Assembly: GCF_018977255.1 (NCBI RefSeq)
Contig: NW_024704745.1
Location: 46,500,001-46,564,000 of the forward strand
Direction: 5' to 3'
Source: Callorhinchus milii
Lineage: Eukaryota
DNA: 64,000 bases
Part shown: positions 13,595 to 57,800 of the stretch, piece after piece
Layout: the number at the start of each line of letters is the position of its first letter
Numbering within the stretch: the first letter of the stretch is position 1
The notes under the pieces: generated by a model
Databases searched by the model: none
What the model saw: the letters and a program-made list of their open reading frames with translations, nothing else
What the model was told of the DNA's origin: nothing
Program-made: the position numbers and the translations under genes

Positions 13595-16593
13595 GATCTT
13601 TCACCCTTCTGTCAACCGCTCCCTCCACATTGGACTACAAAACGTCCGCTCCCTCTGTAATAAGGCTTTGGTCATCAACGATCTCATCCTTGATGAGAGG
13701 TTGACATCATGGCCTTAACTAAAACCTGGCTCACCCCAAGCGACACCTTCCCTCTCACGGAGGCCACACCACCACCCGGCTACACCTCCCACCACCTCCC
13801 TCGCCCCAACCGCCGTGGCAGTCGTGTAGCCCTTATCTCAAGGACACCACTTGCCCTATCCCCCTACTCCTCTGGCTTTTTCCCCTCTTTTGAGAACCTC
13901 ACCTTCTCCCACCCCTCCCATCTCTCACTCAAAATCCTCCTTCTCTACCAGTCCCCTTAAATCTCCCCCACCTTCATCTCCGACATCTCTACCCTCCTAA
14001 CATCTCTCTGCCTCTGCTCTGATCATCTCATCATCCTGGGCAACTTCAACCTGCACTTCACCCCCTCCTGCTCCACCTCCTCGGACTTCTCCTCCCTCCT
14101 CTCCTCGCTCAATCTCTCCCTCCACATCAACTCCACCACTCACATTCACGGCCACCCACTCGATTTGGTGATCACCCGGGGCCTCAGTGTCTCGGATATC
14201 ACTATTACCGACAAGGCCGTCTCCGATCACCACTTCATCTCCTTCACCACCTCCACCCCCCTCCCTACCTCCACCAGACCTACCACCATCTTCTACTGCC
14301 CCTGGAAGAAGTTACCCCCACAATCCCTAACCGCTGCCTTGGAGTCCTCTGAACTCCTTTCCCTCTGGCCTTCAACCCTCACGGACCCCTCTTCTGCTCT
14401 CACCCTCCTCCACAATACCCTCTCCTCCACACTCGACACTCTTGCCCCCATTACCTCCCATACTGTCTCTTACTCTCACTCCTCCCCCGATTCACCACCC
14501 ACCTCCGCTCACTGAAGAGCCAGGTGCGGGCCGCTGAACACACCTGCCTCAAATCTGGCCTAACGGTCCACCGGCAAATCTGGCTGGACCTCCTCAAAAT
14601 CTATCGCTCTACTCTAGCCTCGGCCAAGTCGTTCTTCTACTCCAGGATAATCCTGGAGGTGAAGAACAACCCCAGGCTACTGTTCTCTACCACATCCCGA
14701 CTCCTCTGTCCCCCCCGCCACCCCGCGCAGGTCATCTCCTCCAACCTTCACTGCGAGGAGATGCTGGATTTCCTTGAATCCAAAATCAAGGGAATCCGCT
14801 CCGCGGTCACTGCCCCTCCAACTTCCACCCACCCCCCACCCCTTCCCTCCCACACTCCGACTTCTACCATCCTCCCCTACTCTCCTTTGAACCCGTTTCC
14901 CCACCCTCTGTCACCTACCTTATCCTGTCCTTGAAACCCACCACCTGCTCCCTGGACCCCATCCCCACTCCACTCCTTATCTCCCAGCTTCACCTCCTTG
15001 CCCCACTTCTCACATACACCATTAACCTGTCCCTCTCCTCTGGCTCTGTTTCCATTCCCCTCAAAACTGCCACCATCACTCCCACACTGAAAAAACCCTC
15101 CCTTGATGCGTCGCAGCTATCAAGCTACCGGCCCATCTCCAACCTCCCCTTCCTGTCCAAGGTCCTTGAAAGAGTTGTCGCCTCCCAGCTGCGCTCTTTC
15201 CTCTCCACCCATTCACTATTTGAACCTCTCCAGTCGGGTTTCCGTGCTGCCCATAGCACGGAAACCGCCCTGGTCAAGGTCACTAATGACATCTTGACCA
15301 TCTGTGACCAGGGCTCCCTCTGCCTCCTCGTCCTCCTCAACCTATCGACCGCATTCGATACAGTCGACCACTTAATCGTCCTCCACCGCTTGTCCTCCCA
15401 CCTCAACCTTCAAGGCCCTGTCCTTGAGTGGTTTAGGTCCTACCTCTCCCACTGTCTTCATTTTGTCTCCACTAATGGCTTTTCCACCACCCTCCGCACT
15501 GTCTCGTGCGGCGTCCCTCAGGGCTCTGTCCTCGGTCCCCTCCTCTTCACCCTCTATATGCTCCCCCTTGGTGACATCATCCGCAGACACGGGGTTAACT
15601 TCCACATGTATGCGAATGACACCCAACTCTACCTTTCCTCCTCTACCCTCAACTCGACGACCACCGATGTCCTGACAGCCTGCCTGTCCGACATCGAGTC
15701 CTGGACAAGAGACAACTTTCTTCAGCTCAACGTGCGTAAAACTGAGGCCCTCCTGATTGGCTCACGTCAGCGCCTCCGCACCTCAGGCGCTGACAGCATC
15801 AGCATCCAAGGCTGCACTCTCCACCTCTCAAAGCCAGTCAGGAACCTCGGGGTTCTGTTCGACCCTGAGCTGTCCTTTCTTCCCCACATCCGCGCCACAA
15901 CTGGCACCGCCTTCCATCACCTCCAGAATATCGCCTGACTACGGCACTACCTCACCCCTCACGCTGCTGAAACACTGGTCCACGCCTTTATCACCTCAAG
16001 GCTGGACTATGGGAACTCTCTCCTCGCCGGCCTTCCCGGCACCTCCCTCCACAAGCTGCAGGTCATTCAGAACTCTGCAGCTCGTGTACTGTCCCGCACC
16101 AGGCTTCGGGACCACATCACTCCCACCCTCGCTCGCCTCCACTGGCTCCCCATCCCCCAGAGGATCGAATTCAAGATCCTCATCCTCACCTACAAGGCCA
16201 TTCACGGCCTTGCTCCCTCCTACCTCTCCGACCTACTGTCCCGCTACTTACCTGCCCGTACCCTCCATTCCTCTGGCTCCAGTCTGCTCCACACCCCCCG
16301 CCCTACCATCGGTGGCCGGGCCTTCAGCCTCTCAGCCCCGAGGCTCTGGAACTCCATCCCCCAGTCCCTTTGCCTTGCCTCCTCCCTTTCCTCCTTCAAG
16401 GCCGGTCTCAAGACCTTTCTCTTCAACCGTGCCTTCAGCTCCCCTCTCGACTCTCTACCCCCTCCTCGCTCCCTCCCTTCCCTCACCCTGACCATTTCCC
16501 CCCTGCTCGGGACCCGACCCAACTGTCCAGTGCCTTGGGACGTCCTCCCGACGTGAAAGGCGCTCTATAAATGCAATCTTGTTGTTGTTGTTG
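13595..16593 (+). mobile_element. L2-clade LINE, near-complete ORF2 (APE + RT), disrupted
   Basis: APE QNVRSL..TWL..HIHGHPLDLVI..SDH; [32 protein letters not shown]; frameshifts and stops; 3' stem-loop plus (TTG)n. Confidence 0.95.
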
Positions 16594-28261: not shown

Positions 28262-28697
28262 CTACTCTATTTGAACCATAAGATTTTTCAGCAATGATCG
28301 TTTACAGTTCTTTTCGTTTGTGGCACATGGTACCTCATATTGTTCACATTGTGCACTTTCACCTAAGTACGAACTGGGCGTTGAAGGATAGTTTATATTC
28401 ACATTTACGTGTTCGGATGATACACCCAATATTTTGTATGGTGAGCTATTTTGACTGTGACAAGTCAAATTTCTAAGACGTGCAGGAGATCGCCATTTCA
28501 ATTTTTCCTTTTCAGGAGTATAATTTTGCCCTTTTGAAGGAGAGAATCTTTGTTTGATTTTCTGGTTAAGTATAGATATAATGTTTTCTTCAGGCGGATC
28601 ATTTGGGTTATTTAATAGCTCCAAAATGCGACCCTCTGTTATTATTGTTGTTGTCCTGGTATTTGGCGGAATTCCTGGTTCCTGCTTCTGAATCAAA
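28262..28697 (-). CDS. CD200: CD200-like terminal cytoplasmic exon (~145 aa)
   Basis: Acceptor ttcctcttttttcgttgattag| is phase 2 and matches the TM exon. Long open frame in AT-rich non-repeat DNA ending in TAG. Possible AATAAA on - near 27890. Confidence 0.75.
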
Positions 28698-31600
28698 CTA
28701 ATCAACGAAAAAAGAGGAAAAGTCAACATATCAACCAAATGTATAATATAAACTGAATCCAAACTCTGACGAACTGCCTCATTCTCAGCGTATCTAGCAA
28801 ATATATACCACAGAATTAGACCAACATCCAATGTGTAGCCTTCCCTTTAAGAGTCTTTTTTCTGAAGTCTAGCAACAGTCATTTGATCTCCCTGATATTT
28901 AATCTGCAATGATTTGTAATAGGAGTTGCTAATTTTGTCTGCTTCTTATCATCTCTCATCTTCTGTCACTTTTCACTTGTGTGGTGAGACTGCAAATATT
29001 TAACCTGTTGCAATGTATTCCTCAATTTAGATTTGTGCACATGTCTGACACGTGTGGAAACCCATCAACATGCTTAATAATACCCAAACCAAGCTGAAAC
29101 TTCCAAGAATACCACCTACACCTGGAAATCCCAGAGATAGATTTTTGGTATGAAATGTGCACTCTCCCCCTGGAGGGACACATCCTGCTTGCTTAATTCT
29201 GGAAATTATTAGGTGCAGGTTGTCAGGAGTCAAGGCTTGGAGACTCCAGTGAGTACCAGCTGAAACCACATAGCTTGCCATTGATTGCAAGCTTTCCCAC
29301 TGCTTGTTCAGCTAGGACCACTCTATCCAATAGAGCTTTGGTTTGCATGGTTAATAGGAGCTGAGTGGAATGACTCTGCCTCCAGTGACTTGTCTGCCCT
29401 TCCAGGTCTTCCTGCTGGTGGTTGGGATTAGGAGGCATGGAGGGCAGGGATAGGAGGGTGACTGAAGGCACATTCAATGAGGTGGGACTGTGGGATGGAG
29501 TTCCAGAGGGTGGGGGCAGAGAGGCTGAAAGCACACCTGCTAATGGTGGGGCGGGCAAGGTGAGGGATGTGAGTGACAATGGGCAGCCTTGCCTTACCCA
29601 CCTATCCAGTGGGATGGGCTCAGTAAATCCACTGTCAACCTGTCAACCTGGATCTTGGAGCTGGAATAAAATATAAAATCCAAGGTTCGGCCACATACTC
29701 TCATGGCTTCCAGTTTCATAATGAGGGTCTCATGAGGCACGAGGTCGAAAGTCTTCTGAAAATCACTGAACGCAATGTAGATGGGTTTCCCCTCAACTTT
29801 ACGACATTCTGTGATCTATACAGAGCCACAACCTGTTCCACACATTCCTCACGAGAACACAAGGCAACCTGCTCCTTGCTGATCGAACCGCGAGACACAT
29901 CAATAATTGGTAAATTTGGGATCACATTAGAACTTAATTTGCTTCTAACAGCTAATCACATTGTGGCACAACAATTACGCAAGCTCCTTTTACTTATTTG
30001 CCAGAATATTAATCAGATGCTGATTATTCAATAATAGGACTTCCGTAAAATAGTCACAATACTTATTGACTTTTTTCTGCAAGGTCACAGGTTCAATCCT
30101 TATTCTCCACTAAATTAACTGACCTCAAATGGAGAGATACTAGGCTTGCTTCAGTTGGTCTCAATGATAAGGATTTGTTCTCAATTTGTCCACAGACATA
30201 TTTAAAGAAAGCAAGACATTTTGTACAAAGCAACACAAGGAAATATAATCAGAAATTACCTGCCCTGAGGTAAACCTACCTTTTCAATTTATTTCTCCAA
30301 TTCCAGATTGCCAGACATACCACCACTATAATAATTGCTGCACATGCAATCAAAATAGGTGATTTGTTTTTCACTTGATCCGAAGCTGCAAGTAAAATGC
30401 GGGAAAACATTATGAAATAAACCTGGAAATGTGACATTATTTACCTGCATCAATAACTGGTTGACAAAAGGTAACAACAACAACTTGGATTTATATAGCG
30501 CCCTCCACGCCGGACGGCGTCTTTCTTTAATCAACAATCAACAGGAAAAGCTCACTCAGTAGGAGGAGCAATGATGGTTGAATTTCCATGCAGTTTTGTA
30601 ATATGTCACCAAGTTGTTTCCAGAACAATGACCAACCAAATTGATAGACCAAGAAATAGACTGATTTTAATGGAGCTAAAAATTGGGTATATTGAAACAA
30701 AATATTTACAGGATGAAATAATGTCCATTGGCAGATAGGAAGCTAAATTTCTGCAGATTAGGGAAACTGGTGAAAAGGATGTTCTTTGGGAGAATTAGTA
30801 ATATCCATATGAATCTTTCCTCTCAGAGATTTGAGGCTGTAGAGTACAACAACAACTTGCATTTATATAGTCCCCCAAATGCCGGGCGGCGTCTCAGAGT
30901 GCTTAATAATGGTGGAGCCCAAGGCCGAGCCATGGGGAGGGGGAAGGTGACCATAAGCACGATCGAAAAGGAAGGTCTTCAGGTGTAATCTGAAGATGGG
31001 GAAGGAGGGAGCTAGACAGAGGGGTTGAGGGAGGGAGTTCCAAAGTTTCGGGGCGTAGAGACTGAAGGCACCGCCACCTATGGTGGAGCCGAGAATTTGG
31101 GAGACGTGGTGTAAGCCGGATCCAGCAGAGCGGAGGAAGCGGATACTTCTGTGGGGAGAGAGAAGGTTAGAGATATAGGGGCATGCCAGGGAATGAAGGG
31201 ATTTAAACCCTAGAATGAGGATCTTGAAGTCGATCTGCTCTGTGACAGGGAGCCAGTGGAGTTTGGCAAGGACTGGAGTAATCGGGGTACGAAATTTGGT
31301 GCTGGTGAGAATGCTGGCGGGGAGACCAGCGAGAAAGTTGTTAGAGTATTCCAGCCGAGAGATGACAAAGGCATTGACAAGGGTTTCGGCAACTTTTCCA
31401 CAGTACATGACAGAATAAGCTTTGGGTCGTCTGCACTTGGAACTGATTTGATGGAAAAATAGTGTTTAGTGTTCCATGTTTCATATTTTTAAAATGTTAA
31501 CCATTGATATCATACAGAAGCGACATGTGTCCAACAGTAATCCTCAGGAGCACAGATGGAATATTATATATACCTTTACATAATTAAAGAAAGACATAAA

Positions 31601-34600
31601 ATATCCCTAATATAAAAGCCATAGAAATTATATAATCATAGAATGATATAAGCACAGAAGGAGGCCATTTGGCCCATCGTGTGTGTGCCGGCTCTTTGAA
31701 AAGAGCTATCCAAATCGATCCCACTACCCTGCTCTCTCCCCATAGCCCTGCAAACTTATAGAAATCCTTTAGCATAGATTCAGTAGGATATTTTGTACTG
31801 TTCAATGTTAGAAGTAAAGGTGTTTTTCGCTAGAGCTGAGGCTCAGAAGGGACCAAATAGAGATCTTTGGTAGGGTGAGGTGATATGAAAGAGCACTCAT
31901 CCTGTTGGGCCTCACTGTAGTTCAAGCAGGGTCCATAAATATTTTAAAAAGTAATTTGATACATGGTTAAAGTGGAGTAATAATAATCCTCGCATTTGAT
32001 ATAGCGCCTTATCACGTCTTCGAGACGTCTCAAATCGTTTCACAGATTATACTATAAAGTGAATTGACTGTATATTTTGTGGGTGAATATTAAGGGTTTT
32101 TCGGAGCAATCAAAGTTTGATAAGGTGGTTCAGGTAGAGAAATCACCAGGGTAGATTTGATGGCTGAAAGTTTTTCTGCTGTAATATTCTACAATTGTGT
32201 GATGAATTCTGAACAGGAATACATACATGTTGTTTGAAGAAAATCCTCTAAAGTGATTGCCCTTTTCAGTGCTGGATGATTCACCACACAGATCACTTTA
32301 CAATCAGCAGCACCAGCTTTAGCCACTGTCAGATTGCTTGTGATCTTTACTCTTCCATCTAGGACCATTGTTGAGGATTGGGTGGACAGTACAGTCACAC
32401 TGCTCGTTGTTTCCCATGTGATTACTGGAGCTGGTCGTCCTGTGGCTGAACAAGTTGCCACAAAATCAGAAGAGCCATTACTGTTTGTAGCAGCATCAGT
32501 GGCACTGGACTGTAGTGTTGCTTCAGGCATTACTTGAAAAGGAAGAAAAGGACAAATGGCATAAAATATAATAGAAAAGCTGGAAAGGAACAAATAACAT
32601 TTTATACTTAACTGAGATATTTAAGCAATACAGGAAGTCCAAAGCCCTTTCACAATGTGAAGAACAAAATATTCAATAGCTGTAAAGCTCTGTGATATAA
32701 CAGATATTCCTCTTTGATATAAACATTGTGGTAATAGTTAACATTTGACATGGCAAGACATAACCACAAGCTTAACTTCAACAATTTAGACATGTAATAG
32801 ACACCCAACAACAAATACCAACTCTTAGCTATAACAGAGGTGGGTCACGTCAACCTCAGCCCCAAAATAATCCCCATTTGCTTATTGAAGTTCCTGTAGA
32901 TTGGTTATGGCACTTCTGGTTACCATCAATCAATATTAGCAACTCTAATTTCAAAATAGATACTAACCACAATTATTCATATGTGTTCAAATATATAAAA
33001 AATAATTACCACCTACCATGCACCGAAAGGCAGGTCTTCCCAACTTTAGCTCCATCTAGGAATGTATTGAAGAGACATTGATAACATCCTTCATCTTCAA
33101 ACCTCACTCCAGAAAGATTAATTATGGACACTGTTACTTCTGATGGGATGAAAGTTGCTCTACCTTCAAATGACCCAAATATATTTGATCCATATTTTTT
33201 ACTAAATGTAGCCGTGTTTTTCTCAGAATGACCATTTAGCTTTTGCCAGGTGACTTGTAGAACATCGTCTGAACCCATTAATGCACATTTGAAGGTAACA
33301 TTACCCCCTAACACCACTTCATGATTCATAGATGTTTTCACTTTCTGTGCTGAACCTGCAACACATAGAGAATATTAAACATACATTTTTCAGATTAAAA
33401 CTATGTGAAATCTGCTAATTTTATACAGTATCGTGCACTTGAAGAGAATAACGTTTGCTAGACCCAGGTGTGGACTGGAAACAAAAGGGTAGGAAACAAA
33501 TTTATTTTCTGTGGGTAGTGTAATCATAAAAATCCTTGCATTGTTATTGTACCTATAATGTCAAGAACATCTCAAATTGCTTCACAATACGCACAGTAAC
33601 TGTCTCCAAAGTGAACGAATTATTCTAATCTAATCCTGGTCTTCTGTTCGATCCCCATATCTCTTAGTATTTATCCTCTTCAAATATCACATTACCCGCC
33701 TTCCCCCACATTGCCCGACTTCACTACTCTCTTCCTTCCCTTGCATATTTTCGAGGCTGAAGAGCTCTAACTTACAGTATTTTGTACTCCTTATTTAATT
33801 TTCTGAATACTGGAAATCAGCCTTGTCGCTGTTCTGTGCAAATGGTTGCCCTTTGGTTCAAATATTTTATTAAAAAAAACTTTTTTTACTATTATTAAGC
33901 AAATATACAGCATTGTATTAAATTCATGGATTTTTTAGTTATTTTCAAAAAGTGAATGATAGTTAACAAATCGCATTGATTTCATGGTTTGTATTTGCTG
34001 CCCCTTTATCAATGTTATCCTATATTTTGTGTTTTTTCTGCTTAACACCCTGCTACTCAGGGAAAGCTTAGGGAACCTAGAAGCCTGTTTGATGAAATTC
34101 TACTCCATGCACCTGAGGTACAATTATCCCTTGCATCTCTGTGGCATGCTTGCTTTGCATTGTATGTTAAAAAATCATTGTTAATGCCGCCACCTTCCTA
34201 GTGTGTGAAGTTTTTATGTTGATGTGTATCATTTATAATTCATTTTGAACTTTAATGGTGTAAATGCTAAGTTTTAGCTGCAGGACAGACTGAATTTAAT
34301 CTAAGTCGATGTATGTATATTTAAGTGAATATCTCTAGAAGGTATTAACTCATTATTAAGCACCGTGCTCAAGCCAAAATTCACTTAATTCTCCTGAGGA
34401 CCTGCGGTTACTGAAAGTGCAGTCCCCTTTGGTATTCAGTGCTTCCTATACCTCAGAAGTGGCGTCAGCGTTTTTTTTTGCAGATCCATTTACAATGTAG
34501 TGTCATTTTTTTACTCCATAGCACTGCATGATAATTAAGTCATCATGTATAACCTGTGTGTTCAGTTAAAGATCACCAATGTCTGAATTTAAATGGGTTT

Positions 34601-36455
34601 TGCATTTTAAAATAAATCAAATTATAAAGTTAAATTTTGTATGAAAATGGAAAGCTTTATAGTAAGTCTGATGGGCTTGATTGTATTGCAAACCAATCAA
34701 ATGCATCATTGATGATTGATGCATTTACTGTATAGTAAAGCGAGAGACCTGGGTTCGATTTGCGGCAGGGTGAAACCTTGGGCAAGTTTCCTTACAACAA
34801 CAACAACAACAAGATTCCATTTATTGAGCGCCTTTCACGTCGGGAGGACATCCCAAGGCACAATACAATTGGGTCAGGACCCGAGCAGGGGGGAAATGGT
34901 CAGGGGGAGGGAAGGGAGGGAGCGAGGAGGGAGTAGAGAGTTGAGAGGGGAGCTGAAGGCTCGGTCAAAGAGAAAGGTCTTGAGACCGGCCTTGAAGGAG
35001 GAAAGGGAGGAGGCGGCGAAGGCACTGGGGGATAGAGTTCCAGAGCCTAGGGGCTGAGAGGCTGAAGGCCCGACCACCGATAGTAGGGCGGTTGGGGCGG
35101 GGGATGTGGAGCAGACCGGAGCCAGAGGAACGGAGGGTACGGGCGGGTAGGTAGGGGGATAGTAGGTTGGAGATGTAGGAGGGAGCAAGGCCGTGAATGG
35201 CCTTGTAGGTGAGGATGAGGATCTTGAATTCGATCCTCTGGGGGATGGGGAGCCAGTGGAGGTGAGCGAGGGTGGGAGTGATGTGGTCGCGAAGCCTGGT
35301 GCGGGACAGTACACGAGCTGCAGAGTTCTGAATGACCTGCAGCTTGTGGAGGGAGGTGCCGGGTAGGCCGGCGAGGAGAGAGTTCCCATAGTCCAGCCTT
35401 GAGGTGGTAAAGGCGTGGACCAGAGTTACTCCACACTCCTGATAATAATCCCTCAAAAAATATAATAAATTGGTCATTTCAATCCACGACTGTCTGTGGG
35501 ACACTGCTGTGCGCAATTGGCTGCCGCATTTCGCCCACAAATATACGGTCAATTCACATTACAGTGTGTTCTGTGAAGAGCTTTGGGACGTCCTCCCGAC
35601 GTGAAAAGCGCTATATCAAATGCAAGGATTATTATTATTCTGTGAAGTACTTTGAGATGTCTAGAAAACGTGAAAAGCGCTATATCAAATGCAAGGATTA
35701 TTATTATTATCTATATAATTCCTTTCAAAATAATTCATGAATTACATAATCCTGTTTCCACTTTCTGTGCTGAACCTGTAACACAGAAAGTATAATTAAA
35801 CATGCATTTTTTCAGAATAAGACAGTGTATAAGATCTTTGCTAATTTTATACAGTATATATCTCTTAGTATTTATCCTCTTCAAATGCCCATATCGTTAT
35901 TTTCTACATATGAATTATAATTCATGAACTACTTCATTCTATTTCCATTTGCTGTCACACATTCTCACCCCTTTCTCTCTCTCTCTCCTCTCTTTTCCCC
36001 CCACCCCCTACCCCCCTTTCTCTCTTCCCCCACTCTCCTCAGAGGGATGCACCCTGCTTATCTACTCCTGGAAAATGTTAGGGGCATTTTGCTAAGAGCT
36101 AAGGTTTGGGGGATCCAAGAGTATACACATTTAAAAACAGCCGAAAAAGGAAAATTGACGTTTCAAATTAAGAAAGATTTGCAAAACTTCAATTCCATCA
36201 CTCTCTTATAACCATATAACCACAAAATCATTTGCATCTTTTACGAGCATTGCACTACCAGAGCAATCAATCGCAAAGTCATATTTCCGAATGAAACTTT
36301 ACAAAGTCAATAAAATAATGCAGCCCCAATGCTGTCAAACATTTGAAATATCTCCTAATGTGTTCCCCTAAAATCTATACAAAACACAGTGAGGACTTAC
36401 ACAAGTGTCCAGTGAAGAGTTGCAAGAATATCAGTTTGATGCCCAGTATGTTCAT
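28262..36455 (-). CDS. CD200: CD200 (OX-2)-like IgV+IgC2 membrane glycoprotein with long cytoplasmic tail, 413 aa (exons 36455-36401, 33355-33017, 32532-32227, 30385-30280, 28697-28262)
   Basis: Exon phases 1,1,1,2 join into one 1242-nt ORF. The V domain has CD200-type motifs VTWQK, TFS..G and [14 protein letters not shown]...GKTCLSV (extra F-G Cys pair). The C2 domain has [10 protein letters not shown] and VICVVNH. TM is [21 protein letters not shown]. Orthology versus CD200-like paralogue is not resolved. Confidence 0.85.
29690..29900 (-). mobile_element. CR1 RT fragment
   Basis: Translates to [24 protein letters not shown] (CR1 LDFQKAFDKVPH motif). Confidence 0.75.
30280..30385 (-). CDS. 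CD200: CD200-like transmembrane exon
   Basis: Acceptor ttttacttgcag|, donor AG|gtaggt, 106 nt, [34 protein letters not shown]. Confidence 0.88.
30846..31400 (-). mobile_element. L2 3' fragment
   Basis: [23 protein letters not shown]; (TTG)n tail at 30846. Confidence 0.85.
32227..32532 (-). CDS. CD200: CD200-like IgC2 exon
   Basis: Acceptor ccttttcaag|, donor T|gtatgt, 306 nt, [15 protein letters not shown]...VICVVNHP. Confidence 0.92.
33017..33355 (-). CDS. CD200: CD200-like IgV exon
   Basis: Acceptor tgttgcag|, donor G|gtaggt, 339 nt, canonical Cys-Trp-Cys plus the CD200-type extra Cys pair. Confidence 0.92.
34735..35710 (+). mobile_element. SINE split by L2 (head 34735-34795, body 35426-35640) plus an extra SINE tail
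   Basis: The SINE consensus resumes exactly after the L2. Confidence 0.8.
34796..35423 (-). mobile_element. Young 5'-truncated L2 inserted into a SINE
   Basis: Near-identical to 15980-16590; splits a SINE at ccttac|tccacac; ttac duplicated at 34792-34795 and 35426-35429. Confidence 0.9.
35735..35775 (-). pseudogene. Decayed duplicate of the 5' end of the CD200-like V exon, with its upstream intron
   Basis: 35761-35857 matches 33341-33430 and 35858-35885 matches 33658-33684. Reads acag|GTTCAGCACAGAAAGTGGAAAC, then in-frame TGA at 35737-35735. Confidence 0.7.
36401..36455 (-). CDS. CD200: CD200-like signal-peptide exon ([18 protein letters not shown])
   Basis: ATG 36455-36453, donor T|gtaagt, 55 nt phase 1, joins the V exon as ...GHLCSAQKV. 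Confidence 0.8.
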
Positions 36456-38580: not shown

Positions 38581-39158
38581 GTAAAGGTTGGAAAGCAAAC
38601 TACTTGCCTCAAATCAACCATTGTCTTGGGAAATGCAATTTTGAAAAAAATTGTAGAAAATTGCACAATTCCAGGCACAACCCAAAGGTTCAATTAGCAC
38701 AGAAATACTCCACATCATGTTTTGGTTTCTCTGAGATTTCACACCTGGGTGGAGACTGAGTGGCTAACAACAGAAGTGCAGTAAGAATGTTGGGTGGGAA
38801 GTATCCCATAATGGTGGACGTGATGAGTTTCTGAGCCTTTTTCCATTCTTTCCTTTTGTATATCTGTGTATGGATCGCTTGTATTTTAAAGAGGTTGTGC
38901 TGATTTCTCAGATGAAGTTCAGAAATAAGCTACCTTCAGGAGTTACTGCTGATGCTGCAGAAATGACCTTCAGAAATACCCAATCACCTAGCATTACAAG
39001 TCATCAACAACTCAGTGACAAAAATGACACTTTAAATGTATTTTTGTAATGTCTGTACCAAATAATGCCAGGAGAAGCCAGAGCAGCAGAGCAACAGAGC
39101 AGAAAACTTTGCTCACTTTGCTCAGTGCTTTTCTTCATTCCATTAATCAATATAGGAT

Positions 39159-40292
39159 ACAACAACAACAAGATTCCATTTATAGAGCGCCTTTCACGTT
39201 GGGAGAACGTCCCAAGGCGCTGTACAGTTGGGTCAGGACCAGGGGGGAAATGGTCAGGGTGAGGGGAGGGAAGGGAAGGGAGGAAGCGAGGAGGGGGTAG
39301 AGAGTCGAGAGGGGAGCTGAAGGCACGGTCAAAGAGAAAGGTTTTGAGACCAGCCTTGAAGGAGGAAAGGGAGGAGGCAAGGCGAAGGCACTGGGGGATA
39401 GAGTTCCAGAGCCTAGGGGCTGAGAGGCTGAAGGCCCGACCACCGATGGTAGGGCGGTTGGGTAGGGGGATGTGGAGGAGACCGGAGCCAGAGGAACGGA
39501 GGGTACGGGCAGGTAGGTAGGGGGATAGTAGGTCGGAGAGGTAGGAGGGAGCAAGGCCGTGAATGGCCTTGTAGGTGAGGATGAGGATCTTGAATTTAAT
39601 CCTCTGGGGGGTGGGGAGCCAGTGGAGGCGAGCGAGGGTGGGAGTCATGTGGTCCCGAAGCCTGGTGCGGGACAGTACACGAGCTGCAGAGTTCTGAATG
39701 ACCTGCAGCTTGTGGAGGGAGGTGGCGGGAAGGCCGGCGAGGAGAGAGTTCCCATAGTCCAGCCTTGAGGTGATAAAGGCGTGGACCAGGGTTTCAGCCG
39801 CGTGAGGGGTGAGGTAGTGCCGTAGTCTGGTGACATTCCAGAGGTGATGGAAGGCGGTGCCAGTTGTGGTGCGGATGTGAGGGAGAAAGGACAGCTCAGG
39901 GTCGAACAAAACGCCGAGGTTCCTGACCGGCTTTGAGAGGTGGAGAGTGCAGCCTTGGATGCTGATGGTGTCAGCACCTGAGGTGCGGAGGCGCTGACGT
40001 GAGCCAATCAGGAGGGCCTCAGTTTTACGCACGTTGAGCTGAAGAAAGTTGTCTCTCGTCCAGGACTCAATGTCAGACAGGCAGGCTGTCAGGACATCGG
40101 TGGTCATGGAGTTGAGGGTAGAGGAGGAAAGGTAGAGTTGGGTGTCCACATACATGTGGAAGTTAACTCCATGTCTGCGGATGATGTCACCAAGGGGGAG
40201 CATATAGAGGGTGAAGAGGAGGGGACCGAGGACAGAGCCCTGAGGGACACCGCACGAGACAGTGCGGGAGCCGGAGGAAAAACCATAGTGGT
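39159..40292 (-). mobile_element. Young 5'-truncated L2
   Basis: 399-aa RT C-terminal ORF with a damaged YADD motif (MYVDTQ); (TTG)n tail. Confidence 0.93.
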
Positions 40293-45853: not shown

Positions 45854-48800
45854 GTATGATTTCAAATAATTCTGCTCCAATAGTGTCTCAGAAAGCTTAA
45901 CACTGTAGCCTGACACCGAGCTGGGGAAGGTTACCTTTAGGCACAGTTGAAGAGGAGGTTAAAGAGGGGGCAAGGTGAAGGGATTGAGGCAGAGAGTTCC
46001 ATAGTTTTGGGGCCAGAAGGCTGTGGGCTCAACTATATTGGGGCTCACATAGTCTGGAACTCTCCAATGCAGGGTCGACGGTATACCTTATTGTTGGAAA
46101 TGTCAACTTTGGATGATATGTTAAACCGATGCCCCTGTCTGCCTGTTCAGGTGGATGTTAAATATCCCATGGCACTATTCAAAATGAGAAAGGACCTGGT
46201 CAATTATCCTCCCACTAAAATTGGTCATTCACATCTTGGCGTTGTGTGGGTTCCAGGCAGGGCAAAACCTTGGGCAAGTTTCCTTACTCCACACGCCTGA
46301 TAATAATCCCTCCAAAACAAAAAACAATAATAAATTGGTCATTTTCAATCCACGATTATTTGTGGGACACTGCTGTGTGCAATTGGCTGCCGCGTTTTGC
46401 CCACAAATATACGGTCAATTCACTTTACAGCATATTCTGTGAAGCGCTTTGAGATGTCTAGAAGACATGAAAAGCGCTATATCAAATGCAATGATTATTA
46501 AATTGGCAGCCACATTTGCTTAAAAATACACAATTCACTTTATAGTAAATGTCATGAAGCCTTTTGAGATGTCTCAACGATGTGATAATATGTTCTTATC
46601 GGCAAGGAAAATATAATGACTAATGGGTATTGAGGCTGGATGTAAAGAATAAAAACATATAAATTTTCTGCACAGGAAGAGGCTATGTGACGCATCATGT
46701 CTAAAATACTACCTGATTTTCTAAATCACTTTTTATATAAATCCCATTTTCCTGGTCTCTTTCAATATCGTTTAATGTTTTACAGTTCAAGTGCTTATCC
46801 TGTTCTTTTGAATGATTCTGTTGATTACAGCCTCAGAAAGCCCTTGTAATGAATTCCCAGATGTGATGATACATTCTGTACAATTGGAATAGCAATTTGT
46901 ACTTGTATAGTTCCTTTAATGTAAACAAACATCTTGAAGATCTGTGTGGAAACTCAAGCAAGATGGGGAAATATGGGAGTAAGAGGAATGTGCCAAAGAG
47001 GGAGTTTTGAAGTGTTTTGAAGGCATGGGGGGAGGACGTGAGATTGTAAGAATTCCGTAAAACAAATGTGTAGTACTGTAAGTACTAAACTTGCATCACT
47101 GAACCAACATTGCAGCTGAAGAACTTCAGAGAATTTATTGCAATCTGTAGGTTAATCTATTTCTTTTTTACAGTGTAGCACATACAAAAAGTATCTTTTG
47201 TAAATGAGTATAGTAAATTGGAAATTCCGTGCATTTTTTTTAGGAAGGTAACAATAGTATTGGTGGGATTGGATAATGCTGGGAAAACTGCTACTGTAAA
47301 AGGAATTCAAGGAGGTAAGAAATTAAGTGTTTTTGTAAATTGATTTTGATGGTTATGTTGACATATGGCTGAAACACAATAATAAACACTGATAGAAAGT
47401 AATAACCCTTGTAACCCCTAATTTGTAAAGCTCAGTTTGGGCTTCCATTCAAATTCAGACATACAGATACTCATTGTACTGGCCTACCTCTGAGAATCTT
47501 AGGCATTTAGAGTAGTTCATACTGAACATACTGCTTAATACTAGGCTTCTATGCTTGCATCTTAAGAAATTTTAGAGTGGGCCTTTTTTCATATGAATAA
47601 AGAGAAGTGTGTTAAGCATTGTGTAAAACAAATCCAATGATTCAGTTCTTTACCAGAAAAAAATGCATTCGTAATACAGCAACAACCCTAACAAATTGCA
47701 TTCATATAGCGCTTTTCACGTTGGGAGGATGTCCCAAGGCTCTGGAAAAACAGGGTAACTGTAATAACACTGCTTTTTAATGTGAAAGCCCAGTACACCC
47801 AGCATCTGTACTGACTAGCTATTTCATTTCCTAAACGTTGCCTAAGTTCTCAAAGAAAGTGGCATCAGAGATTTTTCTGACTTGTGTGTAGAACACAGGA
47901 TGTTATGTGAATAATGCACAGCAATGCACAGTGACCACATGGTGATCTGGAAGGTGGCTATTTATTTATTTGTGTCTCACGAATAACGTGCCGCTAAGAC
48001 ATTGGATCCAGCTATCTGCGCTTATAAAAATTACCTACAGGAAATCTTATTGGTAATGATCAAACCATCTATTAGTTCTTAGCCTCGTCTCTTCGAGTAA
48101 GTGCACAAATTTACTGCTATTTTGTTTCACAGACCCTCAAGAAGATATAGCTCCTACTGTGGGATTTTCCAAAATTGACATAAAACGGGACAGATTTGAA
48201 GTAACCATCTTTGACCTGGGAGGAGGGAAACGAATTCGAGGAATTTGGAAGAATTATTATGCTGAATGTTATGGAATTATTTTTGTTGTTGACTCAAGTG
48301 ATGTTGACAGACTGGAAGAAACCAAAAATACTGTGACTGAAGTTCTAAGGCATCCCAGGATATCAGGGAAACCTGTACTAGTGTAAGTGTCCCTGCTGAA
48401 CATATAATAAAGTATTTTGCAGGTTTTTCTATTAATTATCTTGTGCAAAGCTAATATGCATTTTTTTAAAAAGCTAAATATACTAATGATTTATCACACA
48501 TGTTCAAATCCTATATCCTATTTCTTATGCCAATCACTTATAACTAGGTTTGACAGTTATGTGGATTATGTGGTTTGAATGAGTTTATAAAGAAAAATAA
48601 ACTTCATGGAAAACAACAACTTGCACTTATAAAGCGCCCTCCTCTCAGGGTAGTGTCTCAGAGCGATTAACAGTGGCACAGCTTGACACTAAGCCCCGGG
48701 GGAGGTGGCTGCAAGCACAGTTTAACAGGAAAGTTTTCAAGCGGGATTTGAAAGAGGGGACAAGGTGGAGGGATTGATTGAGAGTGTTCCAGAGTTTTGG

Positions 48801-51800: not shown

Positions 51801-54800
51801 ACCTCTGTGGTAGTGAATATAGAATATGTCTTAATTATTTTTATATGTAAAATAATAGAGCTGTCTCCTATTTTTTTNCCTATAGCAGCTTATGTGACTT
51901 GATGTTCTGTGACATACTCACTGTTTTGTCCAGGCCTCTCACTACAAATGATAATTGAAAATACCAATGGCCAACCAATGTGTGCATGTGTAAGGAATCA
52001 ATTTCAAATGTAATGTTTCACAATTGATTTTATATGAAATGTCAAACATTACACTTTCCCTAAATATGTTTTTAAATATTAAAATCCTTTTGTAAAAAGA
52101 GTAAAGTTTTATAATTTAACATTAGAAATTGTTTCAAATTATTTTAACCTTAAAAAATAGCAATAGAACTGCAATGCGGAGGTTAGCAACTGCAATTTTT
52201 CTATGTAGAAAATCAGTATAGTTGTGCTATATCAAATGCAAGGATTATTATTATTCCTGCTGCATTCCATTCATTTTTTTAAGATAACATAATATTTTCC
52301 TGCTGCTAGACAAGTACTTCTGTTGGTTATATCAATGGATAGGGATGGTTTCCAAGTTGATGGCAATGTTGTTGTGCATTTTATGCCAGACAAGAGGGTC
52401 ATAAGGAGATCCTAGTACTTACTATGCACTTAGTTAGGGCTGCCTCAAAACTGTTTAATAACCAACTATCCTCAGGGGGCAGAAGTGGTAAGCAGAGTGT
52501 TCCTGGGGCTGAACTGGCTTCATGATGATGTGCCTGGGAATCGAATATTGAAATGGAGTCAATCCTTTGTGGCAGTCTCAGTAGTTTAGTTGCTGAATCA
52601 GGCAGGTCCACAGTACTCATTGTTAACGACAGATCAGCCAACCTGACTTATTGGCAGGACTTAGAAGGGTAGATCAGTCATTGGGGCAGTGATTCTTCAG
52701 GTATAATTCCTGTTAAGCTTGCAAGTCAATGTGTAGGAGCTCCCCTCCTTTCTCTCTCGCCATTCCCTCTTTGAACCCCTCTAATCCGGCTTCCGCGCTA
52801 CCCACAGCACGGAAACAGCCCCGGTCAAAGTCACTAATTACATTCTGAACATCTGTGATCAGGGCTCCCTCTGACTCCTTGTCCTCCTCGACCTCTGCCG
52901 CCTTCGACACTGTCGACTACTCCATCCTCATACACCGCCTCTCCGCTTTACTCAATCTTCACAGATCTGCCCTTGCCTGGTTTGATGCCAATCTCTCTCA
53001 CTGTCTCCACTTCGTTGCCTCTAACGGTTTCTTCTCCAACCCCCGCACTGTCACATCTGGTGTCACCCAGGGTTCTGTCCTTGGCCCTCTCCTCTTTAAT
53101 ATCTATATGCTCCCCCTTGGTGACAGCATCCACAGACATGGGGTCAACTTCCACATGTATGCGGATGACACCCAACTCTATCTTCCTGCCTCCACCCTCA
53201 ACTCCAGGACCACTGCTGTCCTGACAGACTGTCTGTCGGATATCAAGTCCTGGATTAGGGCAAATTTCCTACAGTTGAATGTGAACAAGACTGAGGCCCT
53301 CCTGATTGGCTCGCGCCAGCGCCTCAGCAACTCAGGCTCTGGCAGCATCAACCTCCATGGTTGCACACTACAGCTCACCAAGCCAGTCAGGAACCGAGGT
53401 GTCTTGTTTGACCCTCAACTGTCTTATCTCCCCCACGTTCAAGCCATGACCCGCTCTGCCTTCCCTCACCTCCGTAACATCGCCCGACTCCGCCACTACC
53501 TCACCCTTCAGGCCTCTGAAACTCTTGTTCATGCCTTCATCACCTCCAGGCTTGAGTATGCAAATGCCCTGCTTGTCGGCCTTCCCAACTCCTCCCTTCA
53601 CAGGCTGCAGATAATATTGAACTCTGCAGCCCGTGTCCTCTCCCGCACCAAACTCTGTGACCCCATCTCCCCCACTCTCTCCCGACTCTATTGGCTCCCT
53701 ATCCTTCAGAGGATCCAGTTCAAGATCCTGGTCCTCACATACAAAGCCCTCCATGGCCTCACCCTACCTCTGCGACCTCCTAATCTTGTTGTTAAATGCT
53801 GCTTTAGCCAGTTAAACTTCAGCAGTACTCCTATGTACACTATGGGGTCTCCAAACCTTGGCTCTTCGCAACCTGTGCTTTATATTCTCTGGAATAAGGC
53901 AAACATGGTGCACCTCTCTGGGGAGTGTGTACTCCATACCAGACAAATGAGAAACATCCATTTATAATTTATATATACACATGTGGAACTCTGTCTGATT
54001 TGGATACTACTCAGCTTCATAATGTGTGAGTCTGATACCCAACTCACCAAACAAGCAAATTGTTGTACCAAAGCAAGTTTCTCACCAAATCAAAGCACAA
54101 TTGAGTTTGCATAATGTAAGTTATCTATTGTTATTAGCCGCATAATACTATTATTGGTGGCTGGTCCAGGATGTGCTTGGTATGTTTTGTAAGTGTTTGA
54201 GTCATTCTCAATCTTCTTTAACATTGGGGATCAGACTCTTTACTTTTAGCATTGGCTTTTGGGCCTGGATAGTGCGATTATGTTGCAGTGGCCACAATTA
54301 TGTGTCAAACTTCAGGTGTGGGCCTAAGCCAGAGATGGAATTGACTTCTGAGGATTTGAACTTGACTGCTTTGGCAATATAGCTCCCAGCACTGAATCTT
54401 GTATTGTTCAATCACTAGTATCTAAGTAGCTGTGGTGGAGTATACTCTCAAATTGTGTATAATGTGCAGGTACTATCTAATATTAAAACAAGGAAAACAC
54501 CAGCAGCACAAAGTTCGACATGGATTTTTCTTTCTATACTTTGCTGCTAATTTAATTTCCTCCGTGGCCCTTTCTGTATATTCCTTGGTGTTCATCACTG
54601 TCTTTTCAATATTATCAATGTAGTCTCCTTGTGTCTGCACCAAAATTGAGGTCTGCAGGAAGAGGTCTTGCAATTCCTTCAGCTGATTCTCAAGACATCT
54701 TAGTTCTTTGTGGCGCTGCTCAATTTCAGACAGTTGTGATTTAGTAATTTTGATGTCATGCAGAAAATTTTCATTGAAAACATACCATCTATTATATTCT

Positions 54801-57800
54801 ACCATATTATTCAACTCTTCTTCAGATATATCTTTTCCAACAACTTCAAGCTGACGCTGTATAAATGCTTTACAGTTTTCTTTCTTTTTAATTAAAACAT
54901 TGTTAAATTCCAATATGGTTACTTCATACTGTTTAAGCAGCAATGTGTGTTGGTTCTTCTTCATTCTTGTAATGACTGCGTCTGCTCCAAAATCTACTAC
55001 CGACTGTTTCACATCTTTTGATAAAGCATCTAAGTGCTTGTGAATGGATTCAGCTTGGATTTTGAGGTCCTTAATGAGGCTGACATTGTCCTTTTTTATG
55101 ACGCTGAAACGGCGCATAGAGGCCATGATAGTAGAGCTTTGGTATCTCAGTTTCTTTATGTTGTTGTTCAGCTCATTGATTTCTTCTTGCATTCGCTGTG
55201 CATCCATCAAGAAATGCTCCAGAACTGGCTCCTTTTCAAAAATAATGGCTTGTTGTTTCAAGACTACATCTTCTTCTATTTTTGTGTTTGCCTCATTGTC
55301 TTTCTTTGTGTGATCTATTTCCTTTATACTTTGTTTAAACTCTTGAAGTCGGTCCTTCATATTGAGTACTTGTGATCAATTCATTTGTTTTTTTTCTACC
55401 ATTACCTAAACTTCCTTTGCAGATTGGTTGCTTTGTTTGGAGCTTTTTACAATTTTCTTTCAATTTCTGTGAAAATAAAATATTTTCAGTATGTTGAAGA
55501 TACAGAAAATGTTAGCAGACTCTTCATGTTTATGGTATTTTCACTACTCAACTAGAAAACCTAGTTTTTGAAGGGAGTGATTACCTTTTATTATTTGGGA
55601 GATTGTTGGCCAGAACACCAAGAGAAACTATCTTCTGTTTTTAAATAGTGCCATTGGATCTTTGATGTCCACCTGAACAGGTAGATTGGAGCTTGGTTTA
55701 ATATCTCATCCAAAGGATGACATCTCTAGCAATGCAGTGCACGCACCAGAATAGCATTGAGTGGTGGTTGTGATTATGAGTTCAAAGTCCCAAAGTGGGG
55801 CTTGAAACCACAATTTTCTGACTCATAGTTGAGAGTGCTGCTAACTGAGCCTTTCAGCAAGACCAAAATATGGTATTCTCATTGTTCAACTACAAAACCT
55901 AGGCTTGATATAATACCTTATGGTGTTGAGACATTTGAAAGACCTTTACAGGATTTTCCTGTGAAGTTTAATGTCAGTGTATTTGTATGTAAATGCAGCA
56001 GCCAATATGCACACAGGAATGTCTGACAAACAAAATTACATTTGTAAAGCTCCTTTCACGTCAGGAGGACATCCCAAGGCGCTGGTTTGAAGTGAATATC
56101 ATTCACAATTATTGGAAGTTTTATATGTAGAATTAGTGCAGTAATAAACTAAGCTATCGATGTGTAACATTCCCATTTCCTCTCATATCAATTTTGATTG
56201 ATCAGGCTGAAAGAAAATCTATACAAGTCCTTCATGAGTAAATACACGGTATGGTATAATATACCATGATTGTTGCCAGGTTTGATCCTGCTTTGAGTTA
56301 GATGATCTCAGCTGGAGTCCTTGGGTTACCTTCTTAGGGAAAGGAAAAAAATTGACCAGAGTTTGTGTTACTAATTGCTGTGCAAAGGACGTGTGTGGCT
56401 GTTGAGTAAGGATATATTGACTTCTTCTGTAATTTCCTATCTTTCTGCACCTCCCCATGGAAGAATAGACCACTATTTAGGCTTGTTGGGGGGGGAGTTT
56501 AAGTAGGTAGAATTTGAAGGCAAATATATGGCAGCCAGTTAGACCACAAATAGCCATGACATTAGGTTGCAGTGACATCACTTCCTGCATATGGCACATT
56601 AAACCAAGGAAGTTCTGCTGACATTACTTAACGAAGGAAGGATGATGGTGTACAATGTGCAAGAAGTGATCAGTGGCAATTTTACAATCTGGGAGAACTG
56701 TAGCCTTTTTTTAAAAGAAGGGACTCCACTTATAGTGGGACTTTTGAGCCCGAGGGACAGTTTAAAATGAGGTTCCCTGTACAAGGAGATCACAGTTGGT
56801 TTATTGTGTGCGCATTTCAGTAATCAAATTAGAAAAATGGAAAAGATCCAGGATCACAACATGAACTTTGAAATTAGAAATTAGTTGCAAAGCGATAAAT
56901 TGTTATCCTACTACTGTATTACACATGTTGGATTTATATTTAAGACTTACATTTCTGAATTTTTGCTTGACAAAATCCAGTAGGCATGTAACTAACTATG
57001 TTTGTGAAGGTGGAGCCATGACTCACAGAAGAAAATTGCACAAAAAGTTCTGAGAACAAAACCAGAGTGGAGATGTAAAAGTGCACACAGTTGTATCACT
57101 CTGCTCTTTCTACCTTACTTTTGGTTGATTTTACCTTTTTCTTCCTATCACCTGTTTTTTTCTGAGCTGAGAAATGGCTCTGTGGGTGATATCTGTGTTC
57201 TAAAACCAGAGGCTGATCAGATACCTTCAGAATTAAATTAGCATTTCATTTATAAGGTGGGTATTTTTGCCCCTCAACAGAATACTGCTTGTTTCCATGT
57301 GTCACTTGCAGCATAGTAGCACACTGAAGAGTTAGACAGATATGGGAATGATTTTATTGATAACCACACAAAACTTCTTGTGTAATAAATGTTATCCCAT
57401 CCACTCTGTCATATTATGAAAGACTACAGTTGGCTAGGGGAATGGGCACTTATTTTGTCCAGCTGTTATAAACAATCGTTTATACTCTATGGCATCCATA
57501 CACACTACTGCCTCACAGGAAAGACGTTTTTGTTTGTGACTGAAAGCTGTAGCCTTCTTGGAAGAGAAGGGGTTTCAAAAGGCATTTGATAAGATTGTAT
57601 GTCACATAATTGAGGACATAAGCTATAGAATTTTGAAATGTCAGTCAATAGTTTCTCCCTTTTGAGACTTTAACCTAAAACTATACAATTATGAAATGGT
57701 TTGCATCAAACAAGAACTGTAAAACGTCATAAAAAGGACATAAGTAATCTAAGTTTTAAGTATGTCATAGGGCATGACCAATCAAAATTGGAATATGAAC

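Follow-up and report, generated by a model that had tools for sequence, protein, structure and literature searches.

The 64,000-nucleotide stretch of Callorhinchus milii contig NW_024704745.1 analysed here (positions 46,500,001 to 46,564,000; hereafter the window) contains, on its minus strand, the elephant-shark gene for CD200 (OX-2 membrane glycoprotein). The product is a real, long-tailed CD200, with a cytoplasmic part of 152 residues that on present evidence appears restricted to the C. milii lineage. A sequence-only reading of the window had described this tail as a signalling-type one carrying a motif that resembles the inhibitory tyrosine-based motif of immunoreceptors (ITIM), such that the ligand might itself signal; we found that reading to be unsupported. 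With moderate confidence, we favour a disordered tail that most probably regulates the ligand in cis through phosphorylation of clustered S/T-P-x-K/R sites, and we regard classical inhibitory signalling through an ITIM and SHP-1/2 as less likely.

A five-exon gene with transcript support

Five coding exons, all bounded by canonical splice sites, join into a coding sequence of 1242 nt that specifies a protein of 413 residues (Table 1). Beyond the stop codon, candidate polyadenylation signals are an AATAAA at 370 nt, an ATTAAA at 1034 nt and a second AATAAA at 2847 nt. Re-reading the splice sites from the sequence bore out in every detail the earlier description of the last two exons, in which a 106-nt transmembrane (TM) exon with a phase-2 donor joins a 436-nt terminal exon. 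The TM exon encodes a 20-residue helix (30362..30303; an AlphaFold2 helix spans residues 243-272), followed by the basic stop-transfer stretch NWRNKLK. The cytoplasmic part extends from N262 to E413, and the five tyrosines, the SPYKIL and QYEVP motifs and the MVQIE terminus that had been described were all located in the spliced product.

This product is 100% identical to C. milii XP_007901222.1 (413 residues), and also to the Ensembl entry A0A4W3H9V1 ('CD200 molecule') and to XP_042189757.1. The last of these, a predicted isoform X1, begins with 'MR' directly ahead of the mature N-terminus, has no signal peptide and is probably an alternative-first-exon model of doubtful function. The transcript-derived entries V9KVN7 and NP_001279700.1/AFK11501.1/K4G0N2 ('OX-2 membrane glycoprotein precursor') depart from the spliced product by one to three differences: T286S in V9KVN7, and in AFK11501.1 F114C (inside the conserved CLFNTF), the absence of one Thr of TRTTTII (T286) and Q326L. 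These entries carry the 30280/28697 junction, which therefore has independent transcript support. Since the same junction appears in the cDNA-derived, RefSeq and Ensembl entries, the long tail belongs to a real mRNA, as the earlier description implied. No short-tailed isoform was present among the C. milii protein search matches. The AFK/K4G entries, this clone probably among them, reportedly come from the full-length cDNAs of Tan et al. 2012 (PMC3466250). Public records of the gene, the protein and the junction date from 2012-2014, and the model of the gene was already known.

The same entries bear on whether the tail is a gene-model artefact, its terminal exon having been drawn from another gene, a transposon or a retained-intron transcript. 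The adjacent intron does hold transposon fragments, but AFK11501.1/K4G0N2, V9KVN7, RefSeq and Ensembl all share the junction and the tail, the splice sites are canonical and in the correct phase, and the exon has no second copy within the window and no transposon or Pfam match. An artefact is essentially refuted.

Moreover, the tail frame runs through 144 codons without a stop, whereas the other two frames are broken by 11 and 12 stops. Base composition gives such an open frame a probability of 3.6e-5, and not one shuffle in 20000 stayed open; thus the tail is genuinely coding. In the 5′ direction the frame stays open for a further 44 codons beyond the acceptor (28698..28831, minus strand), giving 189 codons in total, an extension with a chance of about 5% by composition. 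It might be a clue to an alternative acceptor or to how the exon arose.

The protein belongs to the CD200 family

The identification of the protein as a CD200-like type I membrane protein with V and C2 immunoglobulin (Ig) domains held up under several comparisons. Pfam V-set and C2-set_2 domains were both found above threshold, and AlphaFold2 predicted two confident beta-sandwich domains and a TM helix. The best PDB match was mouse CD200 (4BFI_B; E 7e-22, 81.4 bits), with VTWQK, EDEGCYxCLFNTF and CSATxRPAP aligned; nectin-3 came close at 78.7 bits, and nectin-1 was also near. All named matches from outside the sharks were OX-2/CD200 or CD200-like, and none of the 71 matches was a true nectin. 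In the family alignment, near-invariant columns are common to the C. milii protein and 33 family members.

We built a maximum-likelihood tree from 22 family ectodomains together with mouse CD200, nectin-1 and nectin-3 taken from the PDB alignments. The CD200-type sequences, Callorhinchus included, split from nectin-1/-3 at 100/98, and Callorhinchus was sister to the CD200 of the sawshark Pristiophorus at 96/92. The sequence-only reading had proposed placing the two Ig domains against CD200, CD200R, CD96, TIGIT and the nectins; the tree sets them within CD200 and apart from nectin-1/-3, while CD200R, CD96, TIGIT and PVR were left out of it. Sequence comparison supports membership of the CD200 family; that the gene is the strict one-to-one orthologue of mammalian CD200 is likely, though short of proven.

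Two other assignments were considered and rejected. Membership of the nectins or nectin-like proteins is contradicted by the split in the tree, by the fact that just two Ig exons separate the signal exon from the TM exon (nectins are V-C2-C2) and by a C-terminus, ...MVQIE, that has no nectin-type (afadin-type) PDZ motif, a point on which the earlier description was correct. Membership of the CD200R family was dismissed because the tail has no NPxY and no chain named CD200 receptor was among the 60 PDB matches listed. With its 152-residue tail, the C. milii protein departs from the very short tail, free of docking motifs, of mammalian CD200. Such a short tail fits the tetrapod and elasmobranch members and does not fit many bony-fish ones, and is therefore typical of CD200 and not defining.

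An orphan tail with predicted disorder

We sought homologues of the tail by several routes. No Pfam family was found in it. Word-seeded protein searches, with the full-length query restricted to residues 262-413 and with the tail alone, recovered only the protein itself; the tail-alone query, aimed at exon-sized ORFs of other chimaeras, matched nothing else at E<=10. An exhaustive HMMER search of 1.84 billion representatives returned the protein and one further match (P0076), a 384-residue tandem-repeat artefact that we rejected as spurious. When AlphaFold2 was run with a 34-sequence family alignment, the predicted local distance difference test (pLDDT) score exceeded 90 in both Ig domains and fell below 50 for residues 280-292 and 321-395; the only helices predicted in the tail, 306-319 and 397-412, were weak. 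Because the alignment is without depth in this part of the protein, low pLDDT there is only suggestive of disorder. On these predictions we would describe the tail as an orphan extension that is intrinsically disordered and has two short patches of helix.

Such a sequence raises the possibility of a functionless by-product, in which a change of splice site or frame made a former 3′ untranslated region or intron coding and the product was merely tolerated. The AT-rich coding sequence, the abundance of Asn, Lys, Ser and Ile, the orphan status and the mostly disordered prediction would all fit, as would the frame that remains open 44 codons into the intron and the several amino-acid differences in the tail between C. 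milii sequences. Nevertheless, a 144-codon open frame in sequence of 37% G+C is unexpected without selection against stops, no short-tail isoform is annotated, and the S/T-P-x-K/R sites described below are clustered in a non-random manner. We consider a by-product distinctly improbable.

Tyrosine motifs occur at chance level and S/T-P-x-K/R sites do not

To assess the motifs in the tail we used 20000 composition-preserving shuffles. A match to the loose ITIM pattern appeared in 27% of shuffles and a YxxP pattern in 37%, with both present jointly in 8.6%; for YxxPhi, P was 0.70. A pattern scan of the tail revealed no strict ITIM ([ILV]xYxx[ILV]), no second ITIM, no immunoreceptor tyrosine-based switch (ITSM) or activation (ITAM) motif, and no NPxY, YxxM, YxN or acidic dileucine. 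The label of a signalling-type tail with an ITIM is consequently unsupported: its sole motif is a loose one, with Ser at -2, and occurs at chance level (P=0.27). The expectation that SPYKIL would be conserved in relatives fared no better, as no tail homologue was found and 0 of 28 long bony-fish tails carry the motif; where a tail has no homologue at all, conservation of a motif cannot be demonstrated.

A different pattern stood out. Four S/T-P-x-K/R sites lie within 37 residues, against 0.29 expected in the tail, and only 30 of 300000 shuffles reached four (P≈1e-4). The terminal exon has no internal tandem repeat, so repeats are ruled out as the source of the four sites. The Ser-Pro of SPYKIL belongs to this series, and pLDDT across the cluster is below 50.

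These data bear directly on a CD200 that signals for itself, in which phosphorylated Tyr356 (SPYKIL) would act as an ITIM and recruit SHP-1, SHP-2 or SHIP, and phosphorylated Tyr389 (QYEVP) would dock SH2 domains of the Crk/Nck/Abl type. Both tyrosine patterns are present in a disordered cytoplasmic segment, and ITIM-bearing tails are found in the wider nectin/PVR relatives CD155, TIGIT and CD96. Moreover, even the short tail of mammalian CD200 has been reported to signal (PMC6826410). Against this, there is one loose motif with Ser at -2 that composition-matched shuffles also yield (P 0.27; both motifs 0.086), and the tail is without ITSM, ITAM, NPxY, YxxM or a second ITIM. No orthologous tail was found to show conservation, none of the 28 long bony-fish tails has the motif and 19 are without Tyr, and the Ser-Pro ahead of the tyrosine falls in the enriched S/T-P-x-K/R series, which provides another reason for those residues. 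We therefore judge self-signalling improbable.

Tails of relatives

Short tails, generally of 0-25 residues, were found in at least 14 elasmobranch species. Pristiophorus, with a V-C2-TM protein, has a tail of about 24 residues; tails of 12-32 residues were found in Heterodontus, Cetorhinus, Carcharodon, Stegostoma, Rhincodon, Scyliorhinus, Mustelus, Chiloscyllium and Hemiscyllium, and ray proteins terminate within the TM or just past it. The Carcharodon and Pristis loci, examined by tblastn, showed a V exon, a second V exon and a TM exon. Searches with tblastn and for open reading frames (ORFs) detected no C2-like exon at either locus, and neither a tail-like exon nor a suitably placed long ORF within 10 kb downstream of the TM exon. 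The tetrapod sequences in the set likewise have short tails (12 residues in koala).

Many bony-fish CD200-like proteins, in contrast, have tails of 57-154 residues. Among 28 bony-fish tails of at least 30 residues, 19 are devoid of Tyr, and an ITIM-like motif is present in none; sites of the TPQK/TPRR/SPGK type occur in 13. A hidden Markov model (HMM) of 18 teleost tails scored the Callorhinchus tail at 5.2 bits, which ranks about 11th of 1000 against shuffles (about the 1% tail of the distribution), and aligned only IKQRFSPSK with vRQRtSpeK. With hhalign, the comparison of Callorhinchus and teleost tails gave a probability of 0.5% and E 0.13, which is not significant. The 6-mer NCKRSL is identical near the C-termini of the Callorhinchus and Arapaima CD200-like tails (P 0.016). 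The TM exon has a phase-2 donor in Callorhinchus, Arapaima and Melanotaenia and a phase-0 donor in Carcharodon; in the two teleosts the donor lies 8-10 residues past the TM, the same place as in Callorhinchus. Teleost tails are split over 2 to 6 small exons. As teleosts themselves vary in this way, we dropped exon structure as an argument against homology of the tails.

From this evidence one could propose that a long tail is ancestral to gnathostomes, homologous to the teleost tails and lost separately in elasmobranchs and tetrapods, its function residing in the shared non-tyrosine patches vRQRxSPxK and the C-terminal C-K/R-K/R-x-L-F/L. Long tails are common among bony-fish CD200-like proteins, the phase-2 donor is shared with Arapaima and Melanotaenia and not with Carcharodon, and the rank of the HMM score and the NCKRSL 6-mer point the same way; with tail exon number variable among teleosts, the single Callorhinchus exon is no bar. 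However, the HMM and 6-mer signals were both noticed post hoc, the hhalign result is not significant, HMMER and word-seeded searches with the Callorhinchus tail recover no teleost tail, and on the tree two gains would be as parsimonious as two or three losses. The signals in these sequences are suggestive at most and not evidence of homology. An ancestral tail is thus possible, though we think it fairly unlikely.

The relatives differ in further respects. Galeomorph sharks and rays have as their nearest CD200 relative a V-V-TM protein (P0002-P0010, P0013-P0016), with a duplicated second V exon in the C2 position, whereas V-C2 is retained in Pristiophorus and Callorhinchus. The names given automatically to the V-V-TM proteins (nectin-1-like, nectin-3, CD226-like) look wrong. 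The Arapaima locus (L002, 2475..14947) contains at least three tandem CD200-like genes, and the tail of the middle gene is encoded by six micro-exons of 27-36 nt.

A proposed role for the tail

The reading we favour is that of a lineage-restricted CD200 whose disordered tail acts on the ligand that bears it. The ectodomain would engage CD200R-type receptors on myeloid and lymphoid cells, as other CD200s do. Proline-directed Ser/Thr kinases would phosphorylate the four clustered S/T-P-x-K/R sites, and the tail would thereby modulate the ligand itself, whether in its surface level or half-life, its sorting, its shedding or cleavage, or the docking of adaptors. The YKIL sequence, which matches the generic YxxPhi sorting pattern, may perhaps act alongside the S/T-P sites.

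Several points weigh against this proposal. The enrichment of S/T-P-x-K/R sites emerged post hoc from some 15 motifs that were tried; it survives correction, with P then about 1.5e-3, but the cluster is a sequence pattern of putative phosphosites and no evidence that they are phosphorylated. Genuine ITIMs sit in disordered, tyrosine-bearing tails, and disorder is therefore no argument against tyrosine signalling. Three of the four differences among independent C. milii sequences fall in the tail and one (F114C) in the ectodomain, which could reflect relaxed constraint, polymorphism or cDNA errors. C. milii was the sole holocephalan compared. Finally, the deepest branching within the CD200 group is a polytomy, in a tree without a CD200R outgroup.

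A broader scenario would have CD200 begin, in early jawed vertebrates, as a long-tailed, self-signalling Ig receptor of the nectin/PVR type. C. milii and, in altered form, bony fish would keep the tail, elasmobranchs and tetrapods would each have reduced the protein to a ligand with almost no tail, and SPYKIL/QYEVP or the S/T-P-x-K/R sites would serve as docking sites for reverse signalling. We attach very little credence to it.

Other features of the window

Vertebrate DNA of high AT content, crowded with transposon ORFs, makes up the window. Repeated ORFs of reverse-transcriptase-like and other kinds lie in the intron between the TM and terminal exons and across much of the rest (e.g. 14778..15935, 39004..40203 and 52849..53964), and the stretch at 14-16 kb has a G+C of 0.57 and a GC skew of -0.49. 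Apart from CD200, just two genes were recognised in the window, one by an Arf-family exon and one as an intronless syntaxin (Table 1); they resemble ARL13B and STX19, respectively. The Arf-family exon probably belongs to an ARL13B-like gene, and the syntaxin would then lie within the introns of that gene. Human ARL13B/STX19 map to 3q11 and CD200 to 3q13, on the same arm and not adjacent; hence the C. milii neighbourhood appears to differ from the human one.

Table 1. Positions of the CD200 exons, tail elements and neighbouring genes in the window, and of two V-V-TM loci of relatives.
Feature	Position	Strand	Description
Coding exon 1	36401..36455	-	Start codon, 18-residue signal peptide and first base of Cys19; donor T/gtaagt; exact N-terminal match to C. 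milii entries
V-set Ig exon	33017..33355	-	339 nt, phase 1 to 1; CD200 hallmarks LQVTWQK and a 13-residue string; Pfam V-set/Ig_3; aligns with mouse CD200 4BFI_B; AlphaFold2 pLDDT >90
C2-set Ig exon	32227..32532	-	306 nt, phase 1 to 1; CSATGRPAP; Pfam C2-set_2, E 5.7e-11
Stalk and TM exon	30280..30385	-	106 nt; acceptor ...ttacttgcag/CTTCGG, donor GAAAAG/gtaggt; phase 1 in, phase 2 out (AG/T = Ser269)
Intron between TM and terminal exons	28698..30279	-	1582 nt; transposon-derived ORF fragments, e.g. 29716..29925, 29223..29579
Terminal coding exon	28262..28697	-	436 nt including TAG; acceptor ...cgttgattag/TTTGAT; residues 269 (part)-413, 145 of the 152 tail residues
Weak predicted helix	28550..28591	-	14 residues (305-318); the adjoining 12-residue patch is the only part aligning with teleost tails (vRQRtSp.K)
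S/T-P-x-K/R cluster (putative phosphosites)	28433..28543	-	SPSK 321-324, TPEK 329-332, SPAR 339-342, SPYK 354-357; four sites within 37 residues
SPYKIL	28427..28444	-	Residues 354-359; fits loose ITIM [ILVS]xYxx[ILV] and YxxPhi (YKIL); contains the fourth S-P-x-K site
QYEVP	28328..28342	-	Residues 388-392; YxxP pattern
C-terminal segment	28265..28315	-	17 residues (397-413); predicted amphipathic helix, pLDDT 51-74; no PDZ-type ending
Arf-family exon	48060..48383	+	Exon-sized ORF, E 6e-23
Intronless syntaxin	54476..55375	-	Uninterrupted 300-residue ORF; Pfam Syntaxin E 4e-37 and SNARE; Cys-rich end CCWCFPCF instead of a TM helix
V-V-TM locus, Carcharodon	L001 36021..43561
V-V-TM locus, Pristis	L004 19859..29275

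Significance and comparison with known systems

The CD200-CD200R pair is a conserved inhibitory checkpoint, in which the textbook CD200 is a passive ligand with a negligible tail. We found no report on cartilaginous-fish CD200 or on long CD200 tails in fish in the searchable literature. A chimaera CD200 with a 152-residue tail kept open by selection shows the cytoplasmic side of the ligand to be plastic in evolution, and long tails, of another sequence, are common in bony fishes as well. Should the tail prove functional, it would offer a natural model of how CD200 might act in 'reverse' or regulate itself in cis. Given that RefSeq and UniProt already list the gene and its protein, that the tail is an orphan and that its tyrosine motifs are at chance level, this is a modest curiosity, which serves better as an annotation note than as a discovery.

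Mammalian CD200 has the same V and C2 hallmark strings, is likewise a single-pass type I protein and also has one last coding exon after the TM exon. Its tail, of 9-19 residues (PMC6826410), is unlike the 152-residue tail of C. milii, and no sequence similarity between the tails was detected. Release of the short mammalian tail by gamma-secretase has been reported, as has its binding to beta-catenin (PMC6826410). The premise of the sequence-only reading that the mammalian tail is very short thus stands, and the premise that signalling runs solely via CD200R is dated (PMC6826410); with the mammalian stub itself reported to signal, the contrast with a passive ligand had been drawn too sharply.

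The nectin/PVR receptors (CD155/PVR, TIGIT and CD96) have related V domains and longer tails with tyrosine motifs, which include ITIMs. The nectins have three Ig domains and an afadin-type PDZ end, in contrast to the two Ig domains and the absence of such an end in the C. milii protein. CD200R1 has a V and a C2 domain, and its tail, tens of residues long, uses tyrosine for signalling (NPxY/Dok2). The V+C2 arrangement is common to both proteins, whereas the NPxY is absent from the C. milii tail.

The teleost OX-2-like proteins (Arapaima, Esox, Epinephelus, Poecilia and others) resemble the C. milii protein in their V+C2 ectodomain, long tail, phase-2 donor, T/S-P-x-K/R sites and basic-Leu-Phe/Leu ending. 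Their tails, unlike that of C. milii, are almost free of tyrosine, have no ITIM-like motif and are encoded by 2 to 6 small exons. By ectodomain, the closest relatives are the elasmobranch CD200 proteins (Pristiophorus japonicus isoform X1, and the Carcharodon, Scyliorhinus and Pristis proteins named 'nectin-like' or OX-2), with a V-domain identity of 50-65%; these have short tails, and those of galeomorphs and rays are V-V-TM and not V-C2-TM.

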